Positions 23,381-64,000 of a stretch of DNA of 64,000 bases are shown one piece after another. Position numbers and translations under genes: made by a program. The notes under the pieces were generated by a model. It worked only from the letters and a program-made list of their open reading frames with translations. It did no database searches and was not told the DNA's origin. How positions within the stretch are numbered: the first letter of the stretch is position 1; each line of letters begins with the position of its first letter. The stretch spans positions 920,689-984,688 of the forward strand of contig CM074809.1 in assembly GCA_037447605.1 (NCBI GenBank), in the 5' to 3' direction. The stretch is from Zygnema circumcarinatum SAG 698-1b. Lineage: Eukaryota; Plantae; Zygnematophyceae.

Positions 23381-26300
23381 TCAGTGCAGGCGCGTCAACT
23401 CTTCGATTCGCTTTGAGAGCTCTTCCACTGTGGAGTCCATGGAGGACGCAACCTCCTCCATCTTATCGCGCTTCAGGTCTAAAAAGGACTCTATTAGGTC
23501 TCCATCCAAGAAGTTCCTGGCCTCCACTGTTTTCCTTTCACTGCTGAAACTTCGCCACTGTTCGTGACTGAATCCTCCCACGCCTTTCACCACCTTTGTA
23601 AGACAAGTTTGCAACCTTTGGAGGAAGAGGAATTGGTCGTGGGGCAGAGATGCAATTACTCCGATCACTCCGTTTACTGTTGCGAATATTACAGTAGGAA
23701 TGTGAGCAGCTTCGGAATCCGGCAGACGCATGACAAGGGAACCATGGCGAAATCGGTTTACAAATTCTCCAAGATGGTATTCCCCCACGACCTGTAAAAT
23801 GGACAGAAAAAGGAAATGGAGCTTCCAATAAGTTCTTACATCTGGAGGCTTTCGAGTTAGGTCTATGAGGATCGTCGAATGTCCGCATTAACAGAGAGAG
23901 ACAGAGGGGAGAGCGTTGGAGGGGGAAAGGGAGAGCGAGTGGGAGAGAGCGAGGGAGGAGACCTCTAATCGGCTCCTCTCTTCATCGGTCGCTGCATCGC
24001 TGTTTTTTCGCACAGTGAAGAGGTTGAAGCTGTTCTCTGCTCCGAGAAAGGTATCATCATCCAAAATCTCCACCGCCGTCATCCAGTTGGCATTGAAGTC
24101 TCTCGCCCTCTCCTCTATGGCCCCCTCCTCAGGCTGCACCAAAACTCACCAAAAGTGTGCCTCCATTGTCAAAATTGAGATAAAATACAAACCTTCCAAC
24201 ACCCAATTCCATTATGGCGATTTCCAAAATTCTCATTAGAAACTGGAGAGCAATGTTTTACTCAGTAGTTCAGAATGGCCCAAAAGGTCCCCTTTTCACA
24301 CCTTATATATGAGAAGGCTGATGCTCTTCATGAGATCTCCCACCACGATGAAATCCCCCCTGCACTGCAAATAGAGGGCCAAAATGTGCCCGTGATGGCC
24401 GCATTCCGCCTGCAATTCTCGCGATCCGTCGTCTCTGAGAGCCCACTTGAAGAGCTGCACTTTCTGGTTGATGGACCCCAAAAGCTTTCCGTTGAACGAA
24501 TTGAGGCTATAAACTGCACCTTTCACCTCCTTCTCGTGCACGAGCTGCAGCTTCTGCTCTTCCACAATGAACACCAAAACGCGGCCCTGCAAAAGCACAA
24601 ACCACGGAACAGGCTCACATATGGACTGCAATGAGGGAGGGGAGGGAGAGGGAGAGGGAGAGGGAGAGGGAGAGGGAGAGGGAGAGGGAGAGGGAGAGAG
24701 GGAGAGGGAGAGGGAGAGGGAGAGGGAGAGGGAGAGGGAGAGGGAGAGGGAGAGGGAGAGGAGAGGGAGAGGGAGGGAGAGGGAGAGGAGAGGGAGAGGG
24801 AGAGGGAGAGGGAGAGGGAGAGGAGAGGGAGGAGGGAGAGGGAGAGGGAGAGGGAGAGGGAGAGGGAGAGGGAGGAGAGGGAGAGGAGAGGGAGAGGGAG
24901 AGGAGAGGGAGAGGGAGAGGGAGAGGGAGAGGGAGAGGGAGAGGGAGAGGGAGAGGGAGAGGGAGAGGGAGAGTGGAGAGGGAGAGGGAGAGGGAGAGGG
25001 AGAGGGAGAGGGAGAGGGAGAGGGAGAGGAGAGGGAGAGGGAGAGGGAGAGGAGAGGAGAGGGAGAGGGAGAGGGAGAGAGAGAGGGAGAGGGAGAGAGG
25101 GAGAGAGGGAGAGGGAGAGGGAGAGGGAGAGGGAGAGGGAGAGGGAGAGGGAGAGGGAGAGGAGAGGAGGGAGAGGGAGAGGGAGAGGGAGAGGGAGAGG
25201 GAGAGGGAGAGGAGAGGAGAGGGAGAGAGGGAGAGGGAGAGGGAGAGGAAGAGGGAGAGGGAGAGGGAGAGGGAGAGGGAGAGGGAGAGGGAGAGGGAGA
25301 GGGAAGAGGGAGAGGGAGAGGGAGAGGGAGAGGGAGAGGGAGAGGGAGAGGGAGAGGGAGAGGGAGAGGGAGAGGGAGAGGGAGAGGGAGAGGGAGAGGG
25401 AGAGGGAGAGGGCGAGGGAGAGGAGAGGGAGAGTGGAGAGGGAGAGGAGGAGGGAGAGGGAGGGAGGGAGAGGGAGAGGGAGAGGGAGAGGGAGGGAGGT
25501 CCACCTTGGTGGGTTCTGGCTCCTCATCCAAAGCATAGGCTGTGCCCACAACATAGTAAGTTGCCGGATCGTCGGAGAATGAACATGAGATGAGGGAGCA
25601 GCCATGTTCATAGGCATCGAGCTGAAACGAGCCCACGATTTCAAATGTCTGATCGTTGATAAGGCGAACATATGCAGTTTCCAAATCCTCTCCTGTATTC
25701 GAAAACTGCACCGTGTGAAGCCCACCCTCCTCGTGCTAACATCAGTGTTGAGCAATGCAGGAGTCGCCTTCTATGCAGGGAAGGAAGTATTGCAACAACC
25801 CAATGCGATAATAACACAGCACAGAAACATGCATATGCATCATTCTCACGTGTTGGTATTTGATGGACACAATCGCCAGAGTCCGGGAAGCTTCCTGGTG
25901 TGCAATCCGCCGCGGCTGCTCGCCTAAGGGCACAGCGCGAATGTGCAGCTTTTGGATCTCGTCAATGGTGCCGATAGTGAGCTCGCCCTCCTTCCCAATT
26001 GCAAGGCTGCAGATTCGGGCACACCACAACAAAGGGAGTTCAGAGTTTTGAAGGTTTTAGGGAGTTCTGGCAATGTGAAAAAAACTCGGTTTTCGGTTTG
26101 CAGAAACTGGTTTCCAGGATGATGATGATGGTGCGGACGATGTACCTGTCGGGGAAAGATGCAGAGTTGAAGGGGCACATATGGTTCACTTCCTTGAGAT
26201 TCACATTGCTGTAAAGCAGCTTCTTGTTGCTGCTGTAGATCACAGTGGGTCGGTCCGATGCTGCAAACACATGCGTTGCGTTTTTGGATCGGAATGTTCG

Positions 26301-28275
26301 CAGAGTGATTGGCTGTGTCCCAAGAGATATTTTCTTCCTATCGGATAAAGTTCCGGTTTGGGGGTCCACTACAAAATTGAACAAATGCCCATCACCCAAA
26401 GCCACCAGAAGGTACGGCACCTGCATTTCCAGCACCACCCATTAGTTCGACAACAAAACATGTCTATGCAAATACATACACATATATACAAAACCATACA
26501 TTAGAATTCATACTTGAGAACAAAGGGTACCGATTTTTACCGTCTCAAAGGAGCAGAAAAGCACGGAACGAGGAATAACCTCCCCTCCGAGATTCTCTTT
26601 CGCGATTAGGTCGAGTCCGGGCAGCGCAAAAATTCGCACGCTCATATCCGTCCACATGCCCACCGCTGCAAGGGCAGACTTTTCGTCTCCCTCCTGGAGG
26701 GGGTTTATGTCCAAACACGAAATTTCATATTCCAAGCCAATGAACTTCTTCTCGTGCAGCTCCCCCTGCCCGATTTCAAAATACACCAAGTTTCCTCCGC
26801 CCGTCGCTAGCAAGACCTGCACCTCCTCGTACAGGTAGTGGTGTAAGTAAGTGACTTTTTTCTCCAACCTCCCAAACAAAAAAGCATCACGAAGTCTACC
26901 CTCTTCCTTCTGTTCAATGTCCAATCCATTTCCTTTCAGTAAATCAAAACATCGACTCGTCTTCTCCAGTCCTCCTTCCATCCCCTGCACACATACATAC
27001 ATCCATACCTGCGAAGCATTGGCAGCTGCAACATTGATCGAAATTCCCGTGGAGGATTTCCACTCTTTCAGCTGCTGCAGACTGCCGGCGTGCACCAATC
27101 GCAGCGAGGCAGCTGTCACCTGCTCAGCCCATCACCCCTCCACATTCACACTCCCTCTCTCAAGCCCTAAAAGGACCCCTCAACGACTTCAACCTTTCTG
27201 CATGTGCAAACAATCATGATCATTCCCCGCGATCAACCCTCCATGTGCGATATACCCCAACTGAAACTGAAACTTCCTCGACTCAGCGCTCCCTATGCGA
27301 TCTACCCCAACTGAAACTGAAACTGAAATTTCCTCGACTCAACACCCCATCTGCGATCTACTCCAACTGAAACTGAAACTGACACTGAAACTGGCATGAC
27401 CTGCACGAGCTGGTCATGCAGTGCGTTGGCGCATAGCAGCGTCTGCGCGTCCGAGTCGAACCCGCCGATCTCCGTCTCCTCGAGCTCGTCCCCCTCGTTG
27501 ATCGCCAGCACGCGCGTCTCGCTGATGAACGAAACCACGAGGAAGGTGTCGCACGAGGCCGCGGAGGCCGCCCGGAGGGACCACATGCCCTTTATGCCGG
27601 GGAGCTCCGCCGTCGCCTGAAACAGGCCTCCACTCATTGCTTATGGTTAGTAAATGTGTGGGTTTGTATGAATTGGCCCTAAAAGGGGTGGAATTGTCAT
27701 AGGGGTGGAAGTACAAGGTCATGGAACAGGGCTCGAGGACTCCACTCATTGCTTATGGTTGGTAACTATGTGTGGGTTTGTATGAATTGGCCCTAAAAGG
27801 GGTGGAATTGTCAAAGGGGTGGAAGTACAAGCTCATGGAACAGGGCTCGAGGGCTCCACTCATTGCTTATGGTTAGTAAATGTGTGGGTTTGTATGAATT
27901 GGCCCTAAAAGGGGTGGAATTGTCATAGGGGTGGAAGTACAAGGTCATGGAACAGGGCTTCAGGGCTCCACTCATTGCTTATGGTTGGTAAATGTGTGGG
28001 TTTGTATGAATTGGCCCTAAAGGGGTGGAATTGTCATAGGGGGGAGGTGGCTACCTGCTCATTGATGCCGATTCCGTTGCGGACGATGCGGAGGGAGCCG
28101 TCCTTGTACGCCCCCGAGCAGGTGACGACCTGGCCCTGGCCCTGCCTCTCTAGGTCCACAACGCAAAAGTCCACAATGGGGCCCAAGTTGCTGAAACTCT
28201 CCAACACTTCCACGTAGCTGCCGTTCGGGCTCGGGGTGGGGGTCAGCTTCACCAGCTGCTCCCACATCCCAAAAG

Positions 28276-31300: not shown

Positions 31301-32322
31301 TCCTTGTTCTCTGACTGCATGAAGTCCCGAAACCAACCGCTTCGTGAGCCAAACTAACCTAAACCCAGACTCAATGATTCTGGGCACTTGAGGCCATATA
31401 AGTTTTCTTGTGATTGGCTCAATCGTCAATTGAATTTTGAATTTGATTGAGCCCTATGTAACGCATGGAGGAGCCCGCGGAAAATGATATACTTACAAAA
31501 GGTCGATATAGTTCCAAAGTTGCAATCCGACCGTAAACAGGGACATCCAGGAGCGGCTGAATGCCCCCAAAAATGGACAGGAGGTAAGTTTTCTGCTCAC
31601 TTTATAGCTAACACGAATCAAGCATAACCATGTTAGCTTGACAATTTGACTAAAGCCAACTGCCACATGACTATCCGCGCCAGCTGTTCATCCCCCCTCG
31701 TAGTGCGAAGAAAAAAAGTATGCAAATAGATACCTTTCTTTAGATGGTCATGACTAACCGAAACTGAGGGCTTCAACCCCAAAAGTAAAAGACGCGGGAA
31801 AGCGCACCTGAAGGCCAGTTGGAGTGAGCAGATGAATCTCGATCCGAGTGCATTTTCTGATAACTGGTCAAGGATTAGTCTGCCCTTGCATTTCGATTCC
31901 AACGAAGCAGCAAGCGCACACCCCCAAGCCCGCATGACGCCGACTCCCAACTTCACACTACACACAACCAGCTGGCGTGATATAGAGTACCCCAATCACT
32001 TTTGCATGCTGCCTTGAAACCCTTCCTAAGAACATCATCAACAGCAGCAGCGAATCCCCAACCCTAAAAGACACTTCACACACCCGTGAGCCCCCCCTTT
32101 CCAAATTGCCACGTGGCAGCAGCTGCAAGATTAGCAGCCCCACGGAATTCCCCTTCAAGGACTCCCCCCACTCCTTTCTCCTGGTGCCACGTGGCAGCGG
32201 CACGCGACTAGAGGATACGCAACGATGAGGTTTAGGTCGGTGGAGCTCGTGAAATAGCCCACAGCCGAGTGCGTCACATTGGTCGGCTTGTGCGCAGTCA
32301 CGACATAGTTCCAGAGCGACAT
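23381..32322 (-). CDS. DDB1: DNA damage-binding protein 1 (CUL4 adaptor), multi-exon
   Basis: Start [24 protein letters not shown] at 32322. Then [134 protein letters not shown], and C-terminal [14 protein letters not shown]...IEELTRLH stop. Confidence 0.97.
24633..25498. repeat. (GAGAGG)n hexamer microsatellite of about 865 bp filling a DDB1 intron
   Basis: Seen directly. It lies inside intron 24587-25504. Confidence 0.97.
27248..27395. repeat. Three copies of a 50-56 bp tandem unit (cgatctaccccaactgaaactgaaac...) in a DDB1 intron
   Basis: Copies start at about 27248, 27298 and 27354. The intron spans 27120-27400. Confidence 0.85.
27628..28041. repeat. Minisatellite, about 3.7 copies of a 112-114 bp unit, filling a DDB1 intron
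   Basis: ctccactcattgcttatggtt... restarts at 27628, 27740, 27854 and 27966. The copies are near-identical. Confidence 0.95.
29060..29195. repeat. (CCCCCT)n-type microsatellite in a DDB1 intron
   Basis: Seen directly. Confidence 0.9.
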
Positions 32323-32540
32323 GGCGCCGGGAAGCGCTCTCTCTCTCCACAGGGGCTGCCTTTCTCCCGCTTAGCCCAAACTTCAGAATTTGATCCTCGC
32401 CGCGAGCTGAGAGGGAGGGGAAGGAGGAGGGCTCGCCCGCAAATCTCCGCCTTCGGAGAATTTCAGAGGAAGGTCTGCAGAGAGAAAGGGCCTCTCCTGC
32501 CTCGCCCAGCGCGGAGACGGCGGAGGAGGCGCCACGTGGC
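32108..32540. promoter_or_regulatory. Three perfect GCCACGTGGC G-boxes around the DDB1 start (two in intron 1, one upstream)
   Basis: Exact 10-mers at 32108, 32186 and 32531. Function is inferred. Confidence 0.5.
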
Positions 32541-35137: not shown

Positions 35138-36112
35138 TCACCTCCCTCGCCTCCCCAACATCATGATGCACTTCAACCCCCCACGGAAAGAGGAGTCTTG
35201 CTCGCATTGCAGCCATGCATCCTGCAGCACCTCGCCAGCCGTGGGCCTCTGCGCGGGGTCCCTCGCCAGCATCCGACGGACCAGCCGCACTGCACCCGTT
35301 GAGATCGACGGCCATGGAGCTCCCGACACGTCGAATTTTCCGACCTTAATGGCGTTGAAAGTCTCTTCACGGCATTTGCCTCTGAAGGGAAGACTTCCGG
35401 AGAGCATCGCATAGAGAATAACACCGAGGGACCACACGTCAGCTGCAGCTCCGTCCTGAAGTCCTGCAACCACTTCCGGCGCCATGTACGACGGGGAGCC
35501 CGCCGTTTGCATCTTCCCATTCTCACCTCCAATCTGCACTGACAGCCCAAAATCCGCAATGCCCACATGGATTTCGCCCGCGGAATTCCGCCATCTTCTC
35601 CCTTGAGGGGCTTTAGCAGCTTTAGAGCTGTCAATAGTTTCTCCGAACTCGCCGTCCTCCGAGTTCTTCCATCTGAGGAGGATATTCTCCGGCTTCAAGT
35701 CGCGGTGCACCCACCCCTTGGAGTGAAAGGCGGCGACAGCGCGGACTATCTGACGGAAGAAGAGCGCCGCCTCCGGCTCTTTCAGCCTCGTCTTTTCGGC
35801 AATTCGCTTGAAAAGATCGCCCCCTTCATAGAGCTCCATGACGAGGTAGACGGAGTCAGAGTCCTCCATGACTTCGCGGAGCTGCACGACGTGGTCGAGG
35901 CCCGCGAGAGCGCTCATGGCCCGCACCTCCGCGCAGAGGCCGACGATGTCATGCATGTTCATGCCGCGCTTGGCCACGCTCTTGCAGGCGAAGCGCGCGC
36001 CGGTCCGCCTGCACTCGCAGGCGCGCACGAGGGAGGACCCGCCCGCCCCGATGGTTTCTCGCCACTTGTACTTCATCCGGAAATCGCTCTCTGCTCCGGG
36101 GAATATAACCAT
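35138..36112 (-). CDS. Intronless Ser/Thr kinase, CDPK/CRK/PPCK-related kinase domain with no EF-hand module
   Basis: A single 324-aa ORF with GAGGSS loop, FACK, LVMELYEGGDLF, HRDLKPEN, IADFG, GSPSYMAPE, ADVWSLGVILY, W.SIS and ML.RDP..RPTA.EVL. It stops about 25 aa after the kinase domain. The start may be the second Met at 36076. Confidence 0.9.
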   Translation of the reverse strand: MVIFPGAESDFRMKYKWRETIGAGGSSLVRACECRRTGARFACKSVAKRGMNMHDIVGLCAEVRAMSALAGLDHVVQLREVMEDSDSVYLVMELYEGGDLFKRIAEKTRLKEPEAALFFRQIVRAVAAFHSKGWVHRDLKPENILLRWKNSEDGEFGETIDSSKAAKAPQGRRWRNSAGEIHVGIADFGLSVQIGGENGKMQTAGSPSYMAPEVVAGLQDGAAADVWSLGVILYAMLSGSLPFRGKCREETFNAIKVGKFDVSGAPWPSISTGAVRLVRRMLARDPAQRPTAGEVLQDAWLQCEQDSSFRGGLKCIMMLGRRGR

Positions 36113-40629: not shown

Positions 40630-42857
40630 TTAGCTTCCTACACTAGTTTGTCCTTGGATGATTTCGGCATCATGAGCTTTCTTCACTAAAGGAGCCTCCG
40701 CTTGTTTCGCATTTGCAGCTCGTTCTTGTTCCCGGGCCAGCGCGAACTCGGGATAGTTCTGGTCGTTCAAAGAGAGCAGAAACATTCGAACGTTCTGATC
40801 ACGCTTCTCCGTTGCAGCCATGTGCGGGTAGATGACGTGGCGCTTGAAGGCATCCACCTGCTCTCGGAAACAGTCGAGGCTGATCTCTTCGTGGGAGTTT
40901 TGAAACTTGCGATTGTATCCCGTATAGAGACATTCATCCAAGAACAGTCCAACTTCTGGAGCAAGCGGAGTGTTAACTTTTCGGTCCCTGCAAAGAGAGG
41001 CACAAATCCTCCGAGCTTCAGTTGAAGGCTGACTTTCTCACCAACCCCTGAGCAAATTTGAAGTGCATAAAATAGATGAAGATGAATAGCAGCAAACTCT
41101 TGGAAGAACATTACTGGCAAATGAATGAGCCAACATAACACCAGAAGCTAAAGCCACCTCTAGGAAAACAAAAGCGGAGGATGACAAATATTGACTATCG
41201 GCCTCCAAAGCTAAGCGTTAGAGAAACAACTTAAGCAAAACAAACAAAAGTTACCAAACACGTTAAAGTCAAAACACCAAACGATTTGGTAGAGATGTTC
41301 GATAATCTACCTTCGAAAAGCTAAATCGATCATAGATTCAGGTGCAAACCCGCGCAGAACAGCAACTGCCATGCCAATCATCTTTCGAATCTGATGGAGC
41401 ATGAAGCTCTGGCCAACCACATGGCACTTGACGAATTCAATGCCGCCTTCACAGAAAATCTCGACGGTCTTGAAAGAAACCATGTAACGGAGTGCACTGG
41501 GATCCTCTGCTCTAACTCTGGATGTGAAATTATGGAAGTTGTGAGTTCCCTCGAACATACTCAAAACCTTATCAAGTCTCGCCCTCACTTCGTCGTCAAA
41601 CACGAAGGTACTCCTTCCCTTGCTCTCCTCTATGCTCCCTTTTGAAACATCATCTATTGGTCCTCCACATCCTCCTGCCTGAGGTTGTACGTTGTGCTTC
41701 CCTTCATGCTCTGTTGCTGGAACATCAGTTTTAGGCTTCTCTACATTTTCTAGCCCATCTCTGTTTTCTGCGCCTTCTTCCCGTCTCTCCCCTACGCCTA
41801 TCTCTCCTCTCTCCTCCATGCGAACGTCCCTACTACTTTCCTTCACTTCGCCTGCAACAGTAACTTCAGAATGTGCTCTCACTTCCGACTGTACTTTTTC
41901 CAGAGCCCCCTCTGCGTTATTTCCACTACTATGTTTCTCTTCGCAGACTTCCACTCCCTTGATTGTTAATTCTAAATTGCTTCCAGATGAGGCGATTGAA
42001 TCGGCATTCACAGGCCTCACATCTCCTGGACGGAGCTCTTTGTTTTCTGAAGTACCCTTCACTACTGTCTCTACTTTGAGAAACTCCGCATCAAATGCAA
42101 AAGTGGGAATAACGTACTCATATCTCCTCCTATCACAAAGCTGCTTCGCGTTGAAACCATTTGTGACACGTTTGAAACCCAACAGGTGAATATCTTCTGG
42201 AAGCTCCTTGTTCACGCGTTCCACAAAACCTGCTGGCTCTATCACCATTCGAGCTGAAACAACTTGCCCAACTGCACTCACTCCTTTGTCAGTTCTTGCG
42301 GCTCTCATCCAGTCAACACTTCTCGGGTCACCAAAATTGTCATCTCCAATGGCCCCTGCTCGATGCAAAGACGTTTCAAGAATCCCCTCAATCGTCACTG
42401 CTCCCGGATTACGCTGCATTCCTTGGTACTTCTCTCCACAATAAGCAAAGAACATGGCAATCTTCCGCTTCTTGAGTCGCTTCCTGCCCCCTGCTTGAGT
42501 CTCAGAACCTCCTGCGCAGGGCGCTGAGCCGGTCTCGCCTTCCTTCACAGATAAGGATTCTCCCTCAGTTGCTTTCAAGGCGGCAGAACCTCCGCCCAAG
42601 ACAACAGATGAAACGACCCTCTCTGTTTCTTCACGCAACACACCAGAAGATGAAATGTTCTCGCATTCCACATGTGAAGATGCAACTGCACTGACAACTC
42701 TCGCCGAATCACTCGCCGCCTTCTCCTCATCTCCAGCGGCTCCTTCCGGCGCAAGCCTCGCCTTCTTAACAGGCGGCTCGTGGACAGCTGCCTGCTCTGG
42801 AGCAGAGACGGGCTCTTCGCCTTCCCCCGAGCCGCGCCCCTCTGCAGCGGGCGCCAT
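40630..42857 (-). CDS. tRNA pseudouridine synthase, TruA/PUS1 family
   Basis: Exon 42857-41311 and exon 40987-40630. Motifs KRKIAMFFAYCG..YQGMQ, RAARTDKGVSA (catalytic Asp), FNAKQLCDRRRYEY, GTHNFHNFT, GQSFMLHQIRKMIG and TPLAPEVGLFLDEC. Confidence 0.92.
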
Positions 42858-43618
42858 GGCTTCTCCCCCTGCAGCCAGCCTCCCTCCCTCCCTCCCTCCC
42901 TCCCTCCCTCCCACCCAGGGCGCGCTCTCCGCCTGCGTCACGGCTGACGCTCGGGTTTGTTTGTTACTGGTTTTTTCCTGTCACCTGGTTTGCGGTTTCA
43001 GTTCCATGCAGCTCCATACTTCTTCCGTTACATCCACGGCCATCTGTCGAAAGTTCACAGTTCCGTAAATTTTTTTTAAAGAACCTGAAATGACGAGATT
43101 ACCGACCACACGGAAATACCAACATGCCGAAATGTCGAGTTCAGGAACCATGGAGTGACCCATGCGCACAATGTTGTTCTCCATGGACGCAACATGGGGC
43201 CAAGTACAACAACAACAAGGAGAATTGTGGAACAGTCGTGGGCGGACGGACGGGCAGACTTCAACTCTTTTGAGTGCCCGACACGGACGAAGGAAGTCGC
43301 GGGTTGGCTGCCGCTGCCGCCTGCCTGATGCCCGTTCACAGTTCGACCGGCAATCTGTCGTCGCGAGATTTTGAGGGCAATAGCCGAAATTATGGCTGCC
43401 CGGGTGGAGCCTCCGCCCTGCTATTGGCTGTTGCCCGGAAGGGCAGCTCGGTGCGAAAACTTGCGACGGACTGACGGCGCCCAGGCAAATGGCTCCCTGC
43501 ACATGCCGGCCAGTTGCGACTCTGTTCGCCGTTAGGAACTGGCCAGCGTCACGACACGGACGACACGCTACACTGAGCAATAGAAACTGTTGACCCGTTC
43601 TTCCGGCAATCGCTTTTC

Positions 43619-43909
43619 GCCACGTGGCAGCCCGTCCATCACCGACGCCGAATCGGCTGTCCGTACTTTCGAGCGTCGCGCCCGGCTTCCCCGCGTGGCC
43701 GCTTCTGAGCGGCCAGATATGATCCTCGAATCCCGCTCGCTTCCTTCCGCCATTCGCACCTCGCCGTTACACGTGTGCGAATCCAGCTTCATGCTGATGT
43801 GGCATCCCCACAGCGTAAACACGTCTGCAAGGTCTCCTTCCTCCCTCCGGTCCACGGCAGACCGGCCGCCACGTCGCCCGTCGGCACCTCTCAACGGGCG
43901 CCACGTGGC
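43619..43909. promoter_or_regulatory. Two perfect GCCACGTGGC G-boxes in the TruA/MgtE divergent intergenic region
   Basis: Exact 10-mers at 43619 and 43900. Confidence 0.45.
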
Positions 43910-49813: not shown

Positions 49814-50092
49814 CTAAAATATGATGCGGAACTTGGGGGCGGAGGAGCTTCCTGTGGGCAGCAGCTGCCACACGCAGGGCTCCATTCTGTCTGACACGTG
49901 GCAGTAGCCTGCAAGAGTGCCCGCCCCCCCCCCTCCCTGCCCGAACTCGAAGACAGAAGTGTCGCTGGAGAATGTCTCCGGGAAGGGAGGGCCCCCCTCG
50001 GCAGCTGCAGGCTCCGCCGCCTCCGACTGCTTCTCTGCTCCCTTCTTTTGCTCCTGCTTGCCCTTAGGGTTGCTCTGCTTGCTGCGTCCCAT
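49814..50092 (-). CDS. Small (92 aa) intronless protein with a C-terminal motif TLAGYCHVSDRMEPCVWQLLP...APKFRIIF
   Basis: Complete ORF. The C-terminal motif resembles a family of small uncharacterised plant proteins as I recall it (GF/YCxVSDxLEPCxWxILP...APQFRIxF); not verified. Confidence 0.6.
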   Translation of the reverse strand: MGRSKQSNPKGKQEQKKGAEKQSEAAEPAAAEGGPPFPETFSSDTSVFEFGQGGGGAGTLAGYCHVSDRMEPCVWQLLPTGSSSAPKFRIIF

Positions 50093-51050
50093 GGATGCTG
50101 AAAAGAGAACAGAAAGCAGTTCACCTTTCAGAATCAGGGCCAGTTATTGTACAATGAAACCGTCTACCACTGTTCAAGGGATCGAGCGTGACATGAAGCA
50201 GTTTGGTACTTCAAAGAAACGTTGAAGTGTTTTCCAATTCCCACATTAGGGTTGGAGAACTGTTGACTGAAAAGCACTACGCACCCTGATGTCTGTCCTT
50301 TGTTACCTCAACAAGATCATCACGTGGCAAAAGGGAAAAAAAACGAGGGAATGTCACAAGCATCAATACCCCTTTCTAATGAAATCACGTCTACTGTTCA
50401 GATATCAGTGGCAACAGAACAAGAACTTCTACCCAAAAAAAAAAAGAAACTCGAGCAGAATCGTCTAAGGTCGTTATCAAGAAGAGTGAAGATCGGTGTG
50501 ACAATATGATATCTCCCACCACTTCTAAAGGGTGCGAAATCCATAGCGTCAATCTTCTCTGTAGAATGTGAAACTGTACACTAAGGTTGTAAACTTCTGT
50601 AAACATTTGAAGCGCTAAAAAACAAACAGGGAGGGGGCGAAGGAACCCATATCTTGAATATCGTTATCTGGGCTAAGGTGCTTTCTAACTTCTCTGTCGC
50701 TTTTTGCTTGGAGGGGAGAGAAGAAAGTGAGGGAGGGACTACAGGATTGGAGAGAAACTCCCTCTCCTCACCTCTCCCTCTCGTCGCCTCTTCGCCCCTC
50801 TTCTCTCCTCTGCTCTCCTCTTCTAACACATGAAAGAACCCAAAAACAATCTCAAAATAAGGCTGCATTATAACCCACCTGCTGTCTGTGCCCAACGACC
50901 CCAACGACGCCTTTCCGGTAGCCGGGTCGAAGCTTGCAGCCGAAGGAAAATGGACGAACCGATGCTTCCCGCGAGAATTTAGGGTTGCGCTCTGAAGTTT
51001 GGGGTGAAGTTATGACGTCACAGCCCCTCTTGTGTCGACTGTGTGCGACG

Positions 51051-54420: not shown

Positions 54421-56202
54421 TCTGTCTGTTTGCGGGCGCTGCACCCATCCATCCCTTCACCTCCCCCGGTGGCTTACAGTAGTGGCGGAGGGGGGAAAAA
54501 AAAAACTTTCCCTCGTGGTTTCAACAACCGCGTTGTACCAGGCAGTATGAACCGTACGAAACTGTACGGGTCACCGGCGATGCCCTCGGCCCGGGGTTCC
54601 ATGGAGCGGGTTTTAACCGCGCCAGGTCGGATGGCGCGTTGTACGAAAGAGCCCTCCGCCCTGGCAGGTGCGGGCCCCACCACAACCGTGATATCCAATC
54701 AGAGCTCGCCATGTTGTCATCATTGTAACACGTGACATCAAAATTTGTTCTCGTCGTCAACGTGTCTGCGCACGATTGGCCAATGGTCATGTCCAGTCAA
54801 GAGAAGTTTTGCAGTAGTCTGCCGTGGCAGCCACGTTGACGCCACGTCATCAAAACGCGCACACATAGAACCGAGAAAAGCGTCGCACACGACGGCGTAG
54901 CGCTGCATGGAATCCCGCCCTGTGGCTCCCTTGTTGCCTCGGTGCAGATTAATGGTTGGCAGTGGTTGGCAGGGTCGCGAATCAACGGTTGGCAGCCATC
55001 CGATGGTTGATCCAACGGTCTGAACTGCGCCCTAGCGCAGCGCTAAACGACAAACTCAGTCCGATGGCACTTGGCCTGCTGGCGGCGGCGGCGGTGAGAG
55101 CAGCCCTGCGTCAAAATCGTCTTTGCTTTTTAATTTGTAAGCAATGGGTTGTTGACAGGCGGCCGCCATGGCGGAGCAGCAGGAGAGGCTTCTGATGGGA
55201 CTGCTCCGTGAGTGAGCATGGCAGGATAAGGCAGCAAGAGGAGGCAAGGGAATGTGCAAGTAAGGGGTTGATGATAGCGCTTTCGATGCGGAGGACAGGG
55301 CTCCTCTCCAAAAGCTCCAATTCATAAAATAGCAGCAGAGTGGCACTTCAACAGTTTGTGTTGCAATGAGGAAAAGGTCTCTCTCCCGCACTGACACACA
55401 CTCTCTCCCTCTCCATTTTTCAATTACGACAGCTGCTGAATTGTCGCCGCTTCTTCTCTCCAATTCCCCGCTGTTTCTTCCCAAACGCGCTGTCAATCCC
55501 TCTCTCCTTCTCTTCCTCCGGCTCGCCTCTCTGTGTCTCTCTCTCACCATCCTCCGGACTGTAACAGCAATGCACCTTCTTAAAAAACTCTCCATCGCAC
55601 AAGCAGTGTCACGCACGGCAGCAATTACACATCTTGGTTTACTTTGCAATGAATGATATGGCACCACTGGAGTATAATACAAATATTGTTACACGAACCT
55701 TTAGGACACAGATTTCTACACCTTTGACTGGTACTACTCATGCGTGTCCGATGTGTGACGTCAGGAAAATCTGCACATTCACTACATAATCTACGCACTC
55801 TCTGCTGCATCTGCTGCAAAGAGAGCTAAAAAAACGCACCAGTCTTCTGTTATTTGGATTCCTAGCAAAATTGCGGCCACCCCATCTCACTACCTTACAC
55901 CTTCCTTATATAGGCGTACCACTATATGTCCAAAACACCAGTCTGCTGAAATGTTTGGAGCATGTCACGCCATGAATAAACAGGGCCTACAGGTTTCAAA
56001 TCACGTTACAGAGGCAGAGTTTCGACTAGTGCTGACCTAGGACTTCGGAGAGACTGACCCGCTGCTCTATCTTCAAAAAACGTCAAATGTCGAGAAGAGA
56101 GGGTGAGTGGAATTTATCTTACCCCACTTCCCTCTCCTCTACCCCCAACAAGAATTCGTTAAATCCGAACAACTTGCCAGCAGCACACGAAGCGTGAAAG
56201 CC

Positions 56203-57924
56203 TCAAGCCTTGGAGTCGAAACAAGGTTCGGCCACAGACTGCAGATAGGTGTCCACCTCTCCGGTGCTCAGAAACAAGTTCAGTACAGCAGCGATGTCTG
56301 CTTCTGAATCATTGCCCTTTAGTTCATCACATTCCCCTCCTTTCTCTCCCCCAGCTATCCATGTCCCCAACTCTCCAGTCTTCCTTGTAACTTCCGCACT
56401 CCCACTTATCGCCCATGCGTCGCTAGTAACACCCAAACTAGAATTTTTACTCGACTTGTCAACTATGCTGTCACAGTCGTCAATAAGAAAGCTTCCAGCA
56501 GCTGTAGATGTTTGAAGGTCTGTAGCTGCAGCTGCCTCTCCATGGACCATTCTTCCTCCATCTTCTCTCTCAGGCTTGACTTTTGCAACAGCAGTTTTCC
56601 AGGCATCTAGAGATTGTCTCCGAGGACGAGAACGAGGATTAGGAGTACTCCAATCTTCTAACGAGTACTGCCGAAAAGCTTCCTCAAAAACAAGCAGAAG
56701 TGCCGGATCAAAAATTGCGTCGTCAATTTCTGACTCATCGAGCAATTCACAAAACTGAAGCTCGTCAGTAGACTGTTGCAGGTCACTTGATGATGTGCTG
56801 ACTATATCCCCGCTGGTCTCACTTGTAAAGTCGATTTTTCGAGATACTGGCCTCGACTTTGGCGGTTTTGGTGGAGTCGATGACAAAGTTTCAAGCTTCC
56901 AAGGAGCAGGAATGTCCTGCTTAAATGGACAATCAGATGAGGGAGATGGACCAGCTACAGAGTAAATAGAAGATACAGTAGGAGAAGTTGAAGCTGCCTC
57001 CTTTCCAGATGCTTCGGGCAACAGTAATCCCTCTGGACTGCTCGGGTTCACTGATGGTGCTTCCGAGTCGGTTCTCACATTTGTAGTCTCTCCACAACGA
57101 GGAACTCCTAGGCCTAAAAATTCCTCAATATGAGCAGCCAGCATCTCATCTATGCCTTCATCCACTCCCCATAGCCCCTCTCCTGCCTCCTTTCCAGTAC
57201 AAAATGATTGTCCCCCAACCTCTTTACTCGAACCTCTCAGAGACGAAATGTGCTCTACTTCTGCCACGGTCCTGCTCTCTTCTACAGAATGCAGCAAGCC
57301 CTCCTTCACTCCGTGATCTCCTTCACTCCCCACTTTAAAGTTGCTGGTGTCTGGCTGCGCAGTTGACGCGACTCTTTCTCCTCCATCTTGACCATCCCAT
57401 TTCTCAGAAGTTGACACAAAGGCCTCTCCTTCCCAGACATCAACTTTCCCTCTTTTATTGGTTCCAGTCCTGTCAGAAGCATCTAGACTTCCAGAATGTT
57501 TCCCTCCCACTACTCCTGTCTCCACTTCGTTGAAAACTCGACTTGCACCCCTTGCCAGAAACCATTCTTTCAACTGCTTATTCACGCCTTCCAGAGTAAG
57601 TTTCTCAGACTGTCTGCCTCTCCTCCTCCCCATTCTCCGTGCGAATGAAAACCGTTCCTTCGACGCAGGTTGAACCGAAGCCTTTGAACCTTTCCCTTGA
57701 ACAAAGCGCCCCTTGCTCTCAGTGCTGGCGGATTCAAAGCTGCCAAAAGAGCTCTCGCTCTCGCTGTAACTGCCGAAACTTGCGACGCTGCTGCTCTCGT
57801 CTGAGAGCAGCGAGCAGTCGGACACGGTTCGCCCGTACTGCAAGCTGCTCAGGCGAGGACTCCCGCCCTTCACCTCTGCAGCCTTCCTCTCGTTCACGTC
57901 AGCAGAACTCAAGCACGCCCCCAT
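56203..57924 (-). CDS. Uncharacterised 573-aa Ser/acidic-rich protein, N-terminus MGACLSS; paralogue A of a divergent pair
   Basis: Long intronless ORF that shares several motifs with 59084-61279 (see findings). Gly2/Cys4 lipidation-type N-terminus. Confidence 0.8.
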   Translation of the reverse strand: MGACLSSADVNERKAAEVKGGSPRLSSLQYGRTVSDCSLLSDESSSVASFGSYSESESSFGSFESASTESKGRFVQGKGSKASVQPASKERFSFARRMGRRRGRQSEKLTLEGVNKQLKEWFLARGASRVFNEVETGVVGGKHSGSLDASDRTGTNKRGKVDVWEGEAFVSTSEKWDGQDGGERVASTAQPDTSNFKVGSEGDHGVKEGLLHSVEESRTVAEVEHISSLRGSSKEVGGQSFCTGKEAGEGLWGVDEGIDEMLAAHIEEFLGLGVPRCGETTNVRTDSEAPSVNPSSPEGLLLPEASGKEAASTSPTVSSIYSVAGPSPSSDCPFKQDIPAPWKLETLSSTPPKPPKSRPVSRKIDFTSETSGDIVSTSSSDLQQSTDELQFCELLDESEIDDAIFDPALLLVFEEAFRQYSLEDWSTPNPRSRPRRQSLDAWKTAVAKVKPEREDGGRMVHGEAAAATDLQTSTAAGSFLIDDCDSIVDKSSKNSSLGVTSDAWAISGSAEVTRKTGELGTWIAGGEKGGECDELKGNDSEADIAAVLNLFLSTGEVDTYLQSVAEPCFDSKA

Positions 57925-58317
57925 CGCGCTCACAATGTCAGCTTCAAACCAAGTAAAAGCCCACCGAGCCACCCCAAAACGTTTGCAGACGGAATGTGGG
58001 CCTAAAGATGTGTCAAAACTTTAAATTCTAAACAAAGATAAGGCTTTCCCTCAGAATCCACAGCCGCTGCTCGACCCCCACTCGCAGCCTGACCGCAGCT
58101 TAGAGAGCGCCGCTTTAAGTAGAGCGAGGAGCGGCGGCGGCGACACTGTCCGTACAGTGTCCCGCGAACCCGTTATGTACGGTTCCACGGTCGTACAACC
58201 CGTTATGTACGAAAAGAGTCAAAGTTGCCGAAAACTGTACGAAATTGAGCTGAGCCGTACGGTACGGCTGGCCTTAGGCCCGTGTCGGTCCGCGGCGGTC
58301 CGCCCGACGCGTCGCGC

Positions 58318-58434
58318 GCACACGTGGCGCGCGCTCAGCGGCGAAGGCCGCCGCGAACCTCGTTAGGGCCACGTGGCGCGCGGAGAGGCGCGGGGGGGGC
58401 TGTCGGCGCAACTGATCTCAGGCCGCCACGTGGA
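58318..58434. promoter_or_regulatory. Cluster of three CACGTGG G-boxes between the two divergent paralogues
   Basis: cacacgtggc at about 58319, gccacgtggc at 58368 and gccacgtgga at 58425. Confidence 0.45.
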
Positions 58435-59083
58435 ATTGTTTCATGAGGTTAAATAGCAACTGTTTAGTCACAGTTTCAGGACTTTCTGGAATTTTGAACA
58501 GTAACTGGAAGAGTAACGACGTAGGGTTCTAGGATAAACAGGACTGTAACGGTGAACTACACTGGATGGATAGATACGGAACGTCAGGCCGTACCGTACT
58601 TTGAGTGACATGTCTCCCTTGTTGATCCTGGGCATTTTCGGATCAACTACGGTAGATCCAAACCTCTTATCCACTCCCAGAGACCGAGATCTACTGAAAG
58701 AAAATCCAGAGTGGACTTCAAGAAGATCGCGCCCCGCCGCCATGCTGGCGCAGGCCTTGGGCAGAGCGCCGCCAGCTGGACTGATCGGACGGCGCTGGTG
58801 CGCTCAGGATCCGCATCGGACGGCGAAGATCGCATCAATCTCTTCGGCATGATCGGGCCAATCGGCGCCCTCACACGTGGCCGGGCCCTCCGGGCCCGTC
58901 ACGGCGGGTCCTGGTCGCTCCTCCCTCGGCTGGCGGGCGGGGGCTGCATCTCTCTCTCTCTCTCCCTCTCTCTCGCTCAATTCAGGGCGTGGGGGGGACG
59001 GTCAGGGCAGGAATTGCACAAACCAAGAAGTGGGTCTGGCAAATTACGCGGCTCTACAAGTGGGTTTGCAATTATATTTCAGA

Positions 59084-61279
59084 ATGGGGGGCTGCGTGGG
59101 CGTGCCGGAAGTGAGGCAGGAGACTGCGAGGAAGGGAGAGACGGGCAATGGCGACGAGGGCCATTTTCGAGCCTCGTCGGAGTCCTTCTCCTCCTTCGAT
59201 GGACTGCATTTTGACAGCAGCAGTGGAAAGTCGGGTGACCGGAGCGGGAGTGACAGCTCGTCGGGAAGACGGTCGGGCAACTTTGAGCCGATAGAGAAAT
59301 TGTCATTAAAAGGAGAGATTGTGAAACCTGCTCGGAAAAAGGGGTTGCTGTCGAACGTAAAGACACCTACGAAAAAAAGACATTTTCTCGCGCATGGAGG
59401 ATCAAACAAGAGGAATGGAAGGCGGCACAGTTTGTCGTTAGTGGTTGATGTCAGCGAAAGAGTGAGAATGGGACGAAGGAGGTCGACTAGCGATATTCCC
59501 GTCACCGCGGAGGAAGAAATCAAGAAGAGATTTTCAATGGAAGCGAGAGATGCTCAAAATGCGGTCAGTACGGAGGAGGCAGCCGACAATAGTCCGCAAG
59601 AAACGGTTTCTGCAAAAGGAATTGCAAGGCATGGCCCCAGTCCGTTTGGTAGTAAGAGAACCTTCTCGTGGTACGTCGAAACTAAGGTGGATGTCAAGCC
59701 TTGTGACGATGCTGAAGCTGAAAGCGAGAAGAAATCTGGAGGAACAAATTGTGTAGGCTCGCATGAGAAGGATGTAGCGGAGCCTGCAGCAGTGGAGGAG
59801 TTTTTGCCTCAGGAGAAGACTGTTAGTGATGTAGAGATTCAGCAAGTGGTTGATTGGCACTATCCTCTGGCAGATGTGAAATTGCCGGCAGTGGCGGTTG
59901 AAGCTGAGGCAGGTTCAAGGAGTCAGGTTGTGCTGACAGCAGACAACGAGAGAAAGGGTGCAGGTATGAATACTGAGAACGCGAAGGAGAGGGAGGCTGC
60001 CTCTACAGAGTCGAGAGACGAATTCGCTGGAAGTGTAAGCGGAGATGGGGCAATGCAGAGGCAAACAGTGCAGGGCATGGCTGTTTCGAGAGTGAGCCTG
60101 GGAGAGGTGAAGGAGGATGTTGCTTCAGAGAAGAAGCTTCTGGAGGCCGTAGCTGCACTTAGTCACGCCTCGGAGGAAGATAAGCTTGCAAAGAAAGCAC
60201 TCCTTACAGCTGTCAAGAAAGCACAGGAGGCAGCTGCAGCAGCAGCTGAGATGGATGGGGAGTGGAGGGAGAAGCTGATCCTACAGGGAGCTAGCGCAGA
60301 GGTAGGAAACGGTCGAGTGAATGGAAAGTCGCAAAGGATGAATCCTGCTGATGATGGGATAGTTATTGAAGAGTTTACAGGTGCTGTTTCTAATGGCTCC
60401 AGTTCTCCCAAGGGAGGTCATCTTTCTCCAAAAATGCCTACACATCCTAGAGAATGTTCTCCAATGTCTCCCAGCAGGTATTCTCTTTCAACCATGGGCG
60501 CTCCCATTTCCCCAAGGGCAAGTCCAACATCTCCAAGGGCAGCACCTCCAGCACCAAGTCCGCCGAAACTCAAAAGTCCGCAAAAGCCTCCGAAACCGAG
60601 ACTGCCGATAGCGCTCAACTTTACTGGAAAGTCGTCTGCACAAGGTGCTGCCGACTCGTCATCTACCGGTGACAATCTGCAATTAAAGTTTTGTGAATTC
60701 GTCGATGACCTCGACGACCTCGATGATGACGCGGATGCAATCTTTGATCCGGCTCTCCTCCTGACTTTTGAGGAAGCTTTCCAGCAGTATTCCATAGAAG
60801 ACTGGAGTGCTCCATCGCTCGGTCCTCGGAGACGCTCTCTTGAAGTATGGCAGAGAGCTGTTGCAAAAGCCAAGTCTCTGAAGCTCGCGGAGGAAAGGGC
60901 CTCTGCAGATGCATGTGGGACATCAGGGGCCCCAAATTCCCCAACGACCGTCCTTTCGCCGGCGACCTCCCTGAGCAGCACCCACGAAATTGGGAGCAGC
61001 AGTCCAAGGTCGAAGTACGGCTTGCCGGCCGGCCGCGATGTATGGGCCGCCGAAGGGAGCTCTGCAGAGGAGGGGACGGCTGGGAATGGAGGGGGGAGGA
61101 GGGCAACGGCTGGCAAGGAGGAGGGAGAGGGACGGAGGGCGTCATCAGGAGCTGCTCCGGAGGCGGACATGGCGACTGTGCTGGACAGGTTTTTGAGCAC
61201 CGAGGAGGGGGGCAGCGCCCTCTCGTTCTACGACTCGAGTGTATCTTCATCTCCGGTTTTTGACGGAATCAGTGTTTGA
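59084..61279 (+). CDS. Uncharacterised 731-aa Ser/acidic-rich protein, N-terminus MGGCVG; paralogue B of a divergent pair
   Basis: Long intronless ORF sharing DAIFDPALLLxFEEAFxQYSxEDWS and other motifs with 56203-57924. Confidence 0.8.
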   Translation: MGGCVGVPEVRQETARKGETGNGDEGHFRASSESFSSFDGLHFDSSSGKSGDRSGSDSSSGRRSGNFEPIEKLSLKGEIVKPARKKGLLSNVKTPTKKRHFLAHGGSNKRNGRRHSLSLVVDVSERVRMGRRRSTSDIPVTAEEEIKKRFSMEARDAQNAVSTEEAADNSPQETVSAKGIARHGPSPFGSKRTFSWYVETKVDVKPCDDAEAESEKKSGGTNCVGSHEKDVAEPAAVEEFLPQEKTVSDVEIQQVVDWHYPLADVKLPAVAVEAEAGSRSQVVLTADNERKGAGMNTENAKEREAASTESRDEFAGSVSGDGAMQRQTVQGMAVSRVSLGEVKEDVASEKKLLEAVAALSHASEEDKLAKKALLTAVKKAQEAAAAAAEMDGEWREKLILQGASAEVGNGRVNGKSQRMNPADDGIVIEEFTGAVSNGSSSPKGGHLSPKMPTHPRECSPMSPSRYSLSTMGAPISPRASPTSPRAAPPAPSPPKLKSPQKPPKPRLPIALNFTGKSSAQGAADSSSTGDNLQLKFCEFVDDLDDLDDDADAIFDPALLLTFEEAFQQYSIEDWSAPSLGPRRRSLEVWQRAVAKAKSLKLAEERASADACGTSGAPNSPTTVLSPATSLSSTHEIGSSSPRSKYGLPAGRDVWAAEGSSAEEGTAGNGGGRRATAGKEEGEGRRASSGAAPEADMATVLDRFLSTEEGGSALSFYDSSVSSSPVFDGISV

Positions 61280-62304
61280 GCTAACGCGCTCTTACAAGGT
61301 GGGTTGTGCACTGTTCTGCTCTCCCGCTTTCTCGCCCTCTTCCCCTTCCTCCCATCTCTTTCTCATTCCCTGAACTCCGTCCTTGTGTTTGTGTCGATTG
61401 GCTGAAATTGTTGCCTGTGAGGGCAACGAGTTCGTGAATATGTCTAATCTATAGTTTCTTGATGTACACCTTCTTTCCAAGCCAGGCGTGACATGGTTCA
61501 TGTCCGTGACCTTTCCACTGAAAGCCATTCATTTCTTTGTTCGTTGCAGATCTGCCTCTTGCTGCTTTGTAAATTATACTCGCGAACCTTCTACCACGAA
61601 CGGGAGGACTCTCCCCTATGATACATAAAGTGATAAGCTTTGCAACGGCAACGGCGGTCTTGGCGTGAAGAAGCTTCTTCTTTTGACATCAGATGGTGCT
61701 CCTCTGGTGATGCTCGCCAGGCTCCGTATTGTCGCACTGAGAGACATGTACCGCATCCTCGACAAAGAGGCGGAGGCGGGTGGGGGATGCCCTGCTCATG
61801 GCTCGCTTAAATTTTATTAGAAAAGTTCATCTACGGATAGGAAAGTTTTGCTTTTAGGGAGGTCAAAAGTGCTAGCGTGTTATTTTTTTCATTGCTTTGT
61901 GTGCTCCTGTTTATATTGCTATGCTCTCGCATGCTTAGGCTATTATGTAGCGGCGAATGACGCCCATCCAAGCAGTGGCACGTGTACAGTACGCAGCAGC
62001 AGTGCAAGGCAGAGAGGCAGGGCAGCGCGCGGTAACGAGTTCGTGGTGTGGTGTGCGAGTGTGCTCTTTTCCGCGTAATCCCAAACGTCATTGTCCTTCG
62101 ACCGTGCTGTGCTCTCGTCCATGTTGCCCAACCTCGCTAGCGGTTGATGTGCGCACTTGTGGATGCATCAATTGCATGTTGCAAACAGACGTATCCATCT
62201 CCCCGGACGATAGCTTTTCTGTAATCAATAGTTTTTGCTCATTATTGCCCCTTCCATGCGCTCAAGCCCCTCCAGCATATACACATGCATGCATGCGTGC
62301 CCAC

Positions 62305-62725
<421 letters not shown>

Positions 62726-64000
62726 CATGCCCAGCCGCCGTTCCATGCATGCGCCAGTCCCCAGCGCCGGCCCGCCCCTCCCCGGATCCCTTGCCAGGAC
62801 GGGCCCGCCCCCCGCCTCGGCTCCTGGCCCCTCGCGCGAGCCGCCAGGCCGTACACTCCCACCGACATTTTGTCGGTTTATCCGTACGGCCGCCCGGGCG
62901 CAGCCGCCCGCAGGCAATCGGATTCTGCGGCGGGGCTGGGCGGGCGGAGATTCGCCCCCACCACGTGGCGACCCGGGCCCAGCGAGCGGCTGGAAAGGGC
63001 CGAAAAAGGCGCCCATATCCATTGGGGGGGACCGTGCCTCACCTCCCATTGGCCCAGACCGGATCACTGACGTGGACCTTTGTGGCTTCCGAGGTTGCCT
63101 ACTTGGCAGTCCGTACATCCACGTGGTTATACGTGCGAAAGATCTTTCCGTCCCCCCCGCCCGGTTTCCCTGCCTCGGTTCAGACCACACCTCGGATTCT
63201 TCCACGTCAGGGCACCAGCTGGCGCCATCCTATTGGCCGGCCTTTCCCTAGGAAATATCTCTCCCGCCCGCCCGCTCCCGCGCAGCCGCTTGCGCCGAAT
63301 CTTGGGATCGCGGGCACATCCGTTTCCGAACCTGAACCTGGCCGCCACGCGACGCTCGGACCTACTCGAACCTGAGCCTAGCCGCCTCACGAGGCTCGGA
63401 CACCTTCGAACCGCCGCCTCTGAACCTGACCTCGTGATTGAGGAGATAGTGACGTGACGTGTCCTTGAAGCGCCACGCGGGGCTTATCCTGCCGTACGGC
63501 ATGGCCATCATGCTCCCTCACGCCATGGGCCCATCCATGCCCATGCCGGGCATCCATGCGTCCATGCATGCGGACGCATGGATGGGTCCAGGCCCCAGGG
63601 CCCCGGGACGTGCAGACGCGGCCTGCCCTTGGATTAGAAAGCGAGCGCTGGGCGGGCGGGCGGAGGGAGAGAGTGAAAGGGGCGCCGACAGCCGCCGGGC
63701 GGCTGAGGATTAGAGTGAGCGGATAACAGCAAGGGGAGGGGGGAGGAAGAGGATACATAGGGGGCGCAGCTGCAGGGGAAGCGTACGGCAAAAGAGGTTG
63801 AAGGACACTTGTGCGTTGTAGAGGGAGTGATAAGAGGAACAAGGAGAGGGAAGGAGGAGGTGAAGAGGCTGTGGGTGTGAGAAGATGTGTAAGACAATGG
63901 TTTTCGATCGGGATGGGCTTGACTGTAGGGCTTCGAGCCTGTATGGCTGCGGGGTAGCTTGCGCGCAGGAGAGAGCAGGACTGGCGGGGCTTCGGGCGGG

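Follow-up and report, generated by a model that had tools for sequence, protein, structure and literature searches.

Genes A and B of Zygnema circumcarinatum SAG 698-1b, which point away from each other within a 64,000-nucleotide stretch of contig CM074809.1 (the window, whose positions are used throughout), encode two paralogous, largely disordered proteins with an MG(x)C start and a compact helical core. They are best read as members of an undescribed, narrowly distributed eukaryotic (algal) family, and we put the probability at roughly 60% that these are doubly lipid-anchored disordered proteins carrying a helical docking module that is probably phospho-regulated. The family is real, expressed and selectively constrained, and no database names it. 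Its signature is compact, combining the MG(x)C start with a helical module of ~50 residues that holds an invariant RRxS site. The finding is useful for annotation; it concerns an orphan family of very narrow known distribution and opens no long-standing question.

A divergent pair of paralogous genes

The original prediction, made from the letters of the DNA alone, described two long, intronless open reading frames (ORFs) placed head-to-head across a 1.16-kb spacer, and took them to be paralogues sharing at least eight collinear motifs. All of this holds. Counted from its first ATG, gene A encodes 573 amino acids before the stop and begins MGACLSS, while gene B encodes 731 amino acids before the stop and begins MGGCVGV; the ATG-to-ATG spacer between them measures 1,159 bp. 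The two start codons are indeed the first ATGs, none lying between them and the transcript 5' ends. The features of the pair are listed here with the evidence in brackets, which includes assembled contigs of the public sequencing runs X1, X2 and X4:

56203..57924, minus strand: coding region of gene A, intronless (ORF, first ATG, paralogy with B, colinear 2,462-nt X2 contig)
57925..59083, no strand: divergent spacer, probable bidirectional promoter (contig ends, sequence, G-box positions)
59084..61279, plus strand: coding region of gene B, intronless (ORF, first ATG, X1 and X4 contigs colinear over 58983-61296)

BLASTP aligns the two proteins at E 2e-26, with 34% identity over 367 columns that lie mostly in the C-terminal halves. 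All eight collinear motifs are found in both proteins and in the same order, by regular expressions with coordinates and by alignment; the motifs in common are MGxC, RMGRRR, KVDV, KPPKxR, LxFCE, the FDPALL block, the PRRxSL..W..AVAKxK block, DxWAxxGS and EADxAxVLxxFLSTxE. A and B are true paralogues, and an old inverted gene duplication is the best explanation of the pair. Their core block, identical in 73% of columns, is under purifying selection, with a nonsynonymous divergence (dN) of 0.25-0.37, a synonymous divergence (dS) of 0.80-1.40 and a dN/dS of ~0.27-0.31. Among the identical degenerate residues of the core, 25/50 are encoded by different codons in A and B; because half of them differ in this way, it is the protein sequence that has been kept similar.

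Transcripts and splicing

Six public runs from three studies contain a fraction of ~0.8 of the words sampled from the stretch, and four runs (X1, X2, X4 and X6, from three studies) were mapped in detail. Their contigs are strandless, and the depths are not usable for ranking A against B. Depth is zero or near zero over ~58088-58485 in X1, X2 and X4 and low there in X6, and no listed contig of any run covers ~58165-58415. The runs behave as transcriptomes, since the genes are covered, the spacer is uncovered in most runs and a GT..AG joint is present in four of the four that were mapped. Both genes lie in transcript-like contigs in these four runs.

For gene B, single contigs in X1 and X4 span 58983-61296 gap-free and colinear with the genome, so the stop codon at 61277-61279 is retained in the mRNA. 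The whole coding region of A is contained in a single colinear X2 contig over 55700-58078. The contigs bear out the earlier claim that both reading frames are intronless. The sole joint in B removes 61299-61549, and since it starts 19 nt past the stop it marks an intron of the 3' untranslated region (3'UTR) and rules out splicing onto a downstream domain. X2 also has a low-depth unspliced contig across this intron. Two introns were placed:

61299..61549, plus strand: GT..AG intron in the 3'UTR of B, starting 19 nt past the stop (joint in all four runs; splice-site sequence)
56103..56781, plus strand: intron of a spliced transcript antisense to the 3' third of A (joint in X1 and X6; GTGAGT donor, TTGCAG acceptor)

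The transcript with the second joint (56102-56782) is antisense or convergent to A, because its splice ends are canonical on the plus strand only. It occupies 55348-57100 (+), runs across the last ~190 codons of A and its 3'UTR, and has exons without a sizeable plus-strand ORF; it may be a natural antisense long non-coding RNA or the 3' end of an upstream plus-strand gene.

A small family defined by its core

Word-index protein searches depend on shared 5-mers and on query length, and these limits led us to an exhaustive HMMER search with a two-sequence core profile against 1.84 billion cluster representatives at a cut-off of E 0.001. It returned three relatives, each a singleton cluster without a name: P0001 (684 aa, E 4e-17, start MGACVSTS), P0002 (865 aa, E 4e-9, start MGCVSSKD) and P0003 (406 aa, E 1e-4, start MGCAYTNP). 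They come from a Logan transcriptome (SRR8128904/6/7), a EukProt Trinity transcriptome and two ENA metagenome assemblies. By word index, A residues 335-573 had no match, the P0003 core found only itself and the B core found only P0001. A scan of JGI metagenomes with the five-sequence core gave 206 pattern matches, of which tblastn confirmed 0, and language-model features of the ESM Atlas yielded no usable match for the A core or for whole P0003.

All five proteins share the core [AV][IV]FDPxLLxx[FY]EE[AT]FxxY[ST]xx[DE]W, followed after 8-10 residues by PRR[RKQ]S[LI][ED][AV]WxxA. Sixteen of its columns are invariant (F, D, P, L, L, E, E, F, Y, W, P, R, R, S, W and A), RR[RKQ]S[LI] is present in 5/5, and an acidic run precedes the first core helix in four of the five. 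Every member also fits the N-myristoyltransferase (NMT) pattern, has a small permitted residue at position 6 and carries a cysteine at position 3 or 4. Outside the core and the start, the proteins are less than 30% identical and the N-terminal region is almost unalignable. P0002 and P0003 have only the N-terminal signal and a core of ~45 residues in common with A and B. P0001, by contrast, resembles B over the entire C-terminal half, sharing GRRRSxxDIP, VDWHYP, DVWA and a FLS..F[FY]DSS tail with it, and its mRNA ends at a stop codon like that of B, with a 3'UTR that holds no further sizeable ORF. That P0001 is more B-like suggests that the A/B duplication preceded the split from the organism of P0001.

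Ser, Gly, Ala and Glu are abundant in both proteins, ~60% of residues are disorder-promoting, and neither protein has a hydrophobic segment (highest 19-residue Kyte-Doolittle mean 1.5 or less). In a full-length AlphaFold2 model of A built on the five-sequence alignment, the predicted local distance difference test score (pLDDT) is below 50 in 484/573 residues; the islands are 110-130 (a helix after RMGRRR), 397-452 (the core) and, weakly, 545-564 (the tail), with no others. The core helices of A fall at residues 407-418, 422-426 and 434-449, with pLDDT 65-80. Modelled alone, the core shows the helix PALLLVFEEAF, the short helix LEDWS and the helix PRRQSLDAWKTAVAKV, with pLDDT 70-87 over the conserved part. 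In these models the core forms three short helices, and the rest of the chain is of low confidence. For P0003, the ESM Atlas model reaches a pLDDT of 0.40. The islands and signals of the two Zygnema proteins are:

57904..57924, minus strand: N-terminus of A, MGACLSS, predicted Gly2 N-myristoylation and Cys4 S-acylation (fits MG{EDRKHPFYW}xx[STAGCN]{P}; MG(x)C in 5/5 members)
59084..59104, plus strand: N-terminus of B, MGGCVGV, predicted Gly2 N-myristoylation and Cys4 S-acylation (NMT pattern; MG(x)C in 5/5 members)
57550..57636, minus strand: first island of A, RMGRRR then a predicted helix, residues 97-125 (motif; helix 111-124, pLDDT ~73)
59465..59548, plus strand: first island of B, RMGRRRS then a helix-prone stretch (motif; GRRRSxxDIP common to P0001)
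56575..56760, minus strand: core of A, residues 389-450, with LQFCEL, an acidic run, AIFDPALLLVFEEAFRQYSLEDW and PRRQSLDAWKTAVAKVK (alignments, motif)
60683..60874, plus strand: core of B, residues 534-597, with RRRSL at 582-586 (alignments, motif)
56257..56304, minus strand: C-terminal motif of A, EADIAAVLNLFLSTGE (motif; elsewhere in B and P0001 only)
61160..61207, plus strand: C-terminal motif of B, EADMATVLDRFLSTEE (motif; alignment)

These results agree with the original prediction in several respects. It had called the proteins mostly disordered, had read the MG(x)C start as a myristoylation and S-acylation signal, a reading that the pattern now extends to all three relatives, and had stressed the FDPxLL helix and RRxS, which prove to be the most conserved elements across the family. 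It had also been unable to assign the motif set to a known family. Pfam gives no match for A or B, the best candidate being CRF1 at E 0.022, below the cut-off, and no domain in P0001-3; a search of PDB by sequence returns 0 matches at E 10; Rfam has no match in the whole window; and the family motif strings appear in no relevant paper of the literature searched.

A proposed lipid-anchored, phospho-switchable adaptor

In the mechanism that we favour, N-myristoyltransferase would acylate Gly2 co-translationally and S-acylation of the adjacent Cys3 or Cys4 would follow, so that the double acylation would fix the N-terminus stably to the cytosolic face of a membrane. The long disordered chain that follows would bear a few conserved islands, chief among them the ~50-residue module, in which a short turn (Y-S-x-E-D-W) is predicted to link an acidic helix (FDPxLLxxFEEAF) to a basic one, both of them amphipathic. 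RRxS followed by a hydrophobic residue is the classic consensus of basophilic kinases, AGC/PKA-like and also of the calcium-dependent protein kinase (CDPK) type. The basic helix opens with just such a sequence, the invariant PRRxS[L/I], a candidate target of these kinases. Phosphorylation of this serine, Ser438 in A and Ser585 in B, may then switch how the two helices pack or whether a partner docks, which would make the protein a lipid-anchored, phospho-switchable adaptor. The signalling or polarity scaffold of the original prediction is a conceivable role.

The lipid anchor is favoured because MG(x)C is kept family-wide where the rest of the N-terminal region is unalignable, and within the overall reading our confidence is higher for the predicted anchoring and lower for the putative phospho-switch. 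DxxLL also fits five of the five proteins (DPALL, DPLLL, DPTLL), but within a predicted helix, and the known readers of this motif, GGA VHS domains, are not established for plants; it is only a lead. An acidic dileucine [DE]xxxL[LI], a clathrin box, an LC3-interacting region (LIR), an RVxF site for protein phosphatase 1 (PP1), a 14-3-3 mode I site and a calmodulin 1-8-14 motif were judged by eye and dropped, being absent from one or more of the five proteins or off-consensus.

Several points count against the proposed adaptor. Lipidation, membrane binding and location, and phosphorylation are predictions from sequence, any partner is hypothetical, and the NMT pattern is a permissive one. Confidence in the core model is modest (mean pLDDT 69, predicted TM-score (pTM) 0.49), and the model draws on five sequences only. 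Its structural analogues are likewise missing: the best Foldseek hit in PDB has E 2.9, with nothing specific, and a shape search of the Atlas returns only generic helical hairpins at TM ~0.5 or less. As for expression, none of the public runs is recorded as RNA, and sense transcription of the 3' part of A is not strictly proven, because the antisense spliced transcript overlaps it and the contigs are strandless.

Known architectures and alternative explanations

MARCKS, BASP1 and GAP-43 combine an N-terminal acyl anchor, a long acidic disordered chain and a short segment that is switched by a basophilic kinase. By analogy, A and B may follow the same working principle. Homology is not involved: the Pfam model of MARCKS (PF02063) and related models are unmatched, and the alignment has no polybasic-aromatic segment. 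The switched module of MARCKS is a polybasic-aromatic effector domain, whereas that of A and B would be an acidic helix joined to a basic one.

The closest known architecture is that of THRUMIN1 and its paralogues At3g28850 and At5g39865, plant glutaredoxin-like proteins. THRUMIN1 (At1g64500) requires N-terminal myristoylation and/or palmitoylation, associates with the plasma membrane, and has regulatory serines and predicted 14-3-3 sites in its disordered region (PMC8566215). At3g28850 figures among plasma-membrane phosphoproteins (PMC3537754), and in the literature searched both it and At5g39865 were found only in expression or phosphoproteome lists. What the algal family has in common with this group is a lipidation signal at the N-terminus followed by a disordered region, as judged by the NMT pattern with Cys3 or Cys4 in all five members and by the low pLDDT. 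It differs in that the glutaredoxin-like domain and the Cys-rich, putatively zinc-binding C-terminus that define the group are absent from A, B and P0001-3.

Descent from this group, with loss of the redox-like domain and retention of a plasma-membrane function linked to actin or 14-3-3, is nonetheless an explanation to be weighed. The layout recalls the N-terminal half of THRUMIN1, where a lipidated N-terminus precedes a long disordered region with regulatory serines (PMC8566215), and both MG(x)C starts and RRxS sites are present in the family. As the original prediction suggested, Arabidopsis proteins of the group may also contain an FDPxLL-like helix and an LDxF..GG..Y domain start. Yet among the 1.84 billion proteins of the exhaustive profile search, none with a glutaredoxin domain reached E 0.001, and the glutaredoxin domain PF00462 is unmatched in all five members and in their C-terminal tails even at E 10. 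The sequences have no Cys cluster near the C-terminus, the ORF pieces downstream of A and B include none coding for a glutaredoxin, and in the mRNAs of both B and P0001 the reading frame closes at its own stop. The part of THRUMIN1 that can be read off the primers of the paper, residues ~164-186, has no FDPxLL motif (PMC8566215). The original prediction was correct that no glutaredoxin domain follows, but its suggestion of a redox-domain-less derivative of At3g28850/At5g39865-type proteins is not borne out, and we regard such a descent as distinctly improbable.

A plainer alternative is that the proteins are soluble, lineage-specific and disordered, that MG(x)C goes unlipidated and that the helical module is the sole functional part, serving for instance in dimerisation or docking. 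The core is after all the strongest conserved element, the NMT pattern is loose, and lipidation is here a prediction from the primary structure. This would, however, leave Gly2 and Cys3 or Cys4 to be kept in five proteins that are otherwise less than 30% identical, with N-termini that hardly align, along with an allowed small residue at position 6 in each of them; we consider it unlikely. The scepticism can be taken further, to chance ORFs, pseudogenes or non-coding transcripts, in keeping with the low-complexity composition of both frames and the antisense transcript over part of A. Against this stand frames of 573 and 731 codons, a dN/dS well under 1, full-length homologues in independent transcriptomes and metagenomes, and transcript-like contigs over both genes, and the idea is effectively refuted by the A/B paralogy, the dN/dS and the outside relatives.

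Among the important organisers of the cell cortex in animals and land plants are disordered adaptors that carry a lipid anchor. A bolder form of the adaptor reading, which we offer as a long shot, takes FDPxLL/RRxS[L/I] to be a hitherto unknown docking unit, switched by phosphorylation and borne on a disordered tether with two lipid anchors. It might be the green-lineage counterpart of the MARCKS/BASP1 principle, or else a sister of the disordered region of THRUMIN1, without the domain, that in early-diverging algae would organise cortical actin or the anchoring of organelles; A and B would then be two differently expressed isoforms under one G-box-rich bidirectional promoter. If true, an algal lipid-anchored adaptor with a new docking module would extend the picture of cell-cortex organisers.

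The spacer and its G-boxes

The spacer between A and B is probably a bidirectional promoter. It contains four G-boxes of the CACGTGGC type, two of them within the contig-free ~58165-58415 and a third at its edge (58425-58432). Across the whole window the extended G-box CACGTGGC, often as the palindrome GCCACGTGGC, occurs in 24 copies against 1.08 expected, with clusters at 32108-32540, 43619-43909, 49895-50328, 58321-58881 and others, apparently in intergenic or promoter stretches. Because it is enriched window-wide and clustered in several other intergenic stretches, the element is probably a common promoter element of the alga, and we rejected the notion that the G-boxes of the spacer are a special feature of the A/B pair.

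Low-depth contigs of X2, X4 and X6 lie inside the spacer at 58416-58924, upstream of the main 5' end of B (~58949), which itself is near a CT-rich microsatellite at 58940-58982. These contigs may represent an alternative upstream start of B with several upstream ATGs, or a separate promoter-associated RNA.

Other features of the window

Downstream of B, a long dinucleotide microsatellite of the CA/GT type at 62240-63100 gives rise to spurious ORFs of 200-300 aa in six frames (HAHAHA, GMGMGM, PMPMPM). Three further coding features lie elsewhere in the window:

24296-27119, minus strand: exons of a CPSF160/DDB1-type beta-propeller protein (PF03178, PF23726)
35138-36112, minus strand: intronless Ser/Thr protein kinase ORF (PF00069, E 3e-60)
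41307-42941, minus strand: tRNA pseudouridine synthase exon (PF01416)

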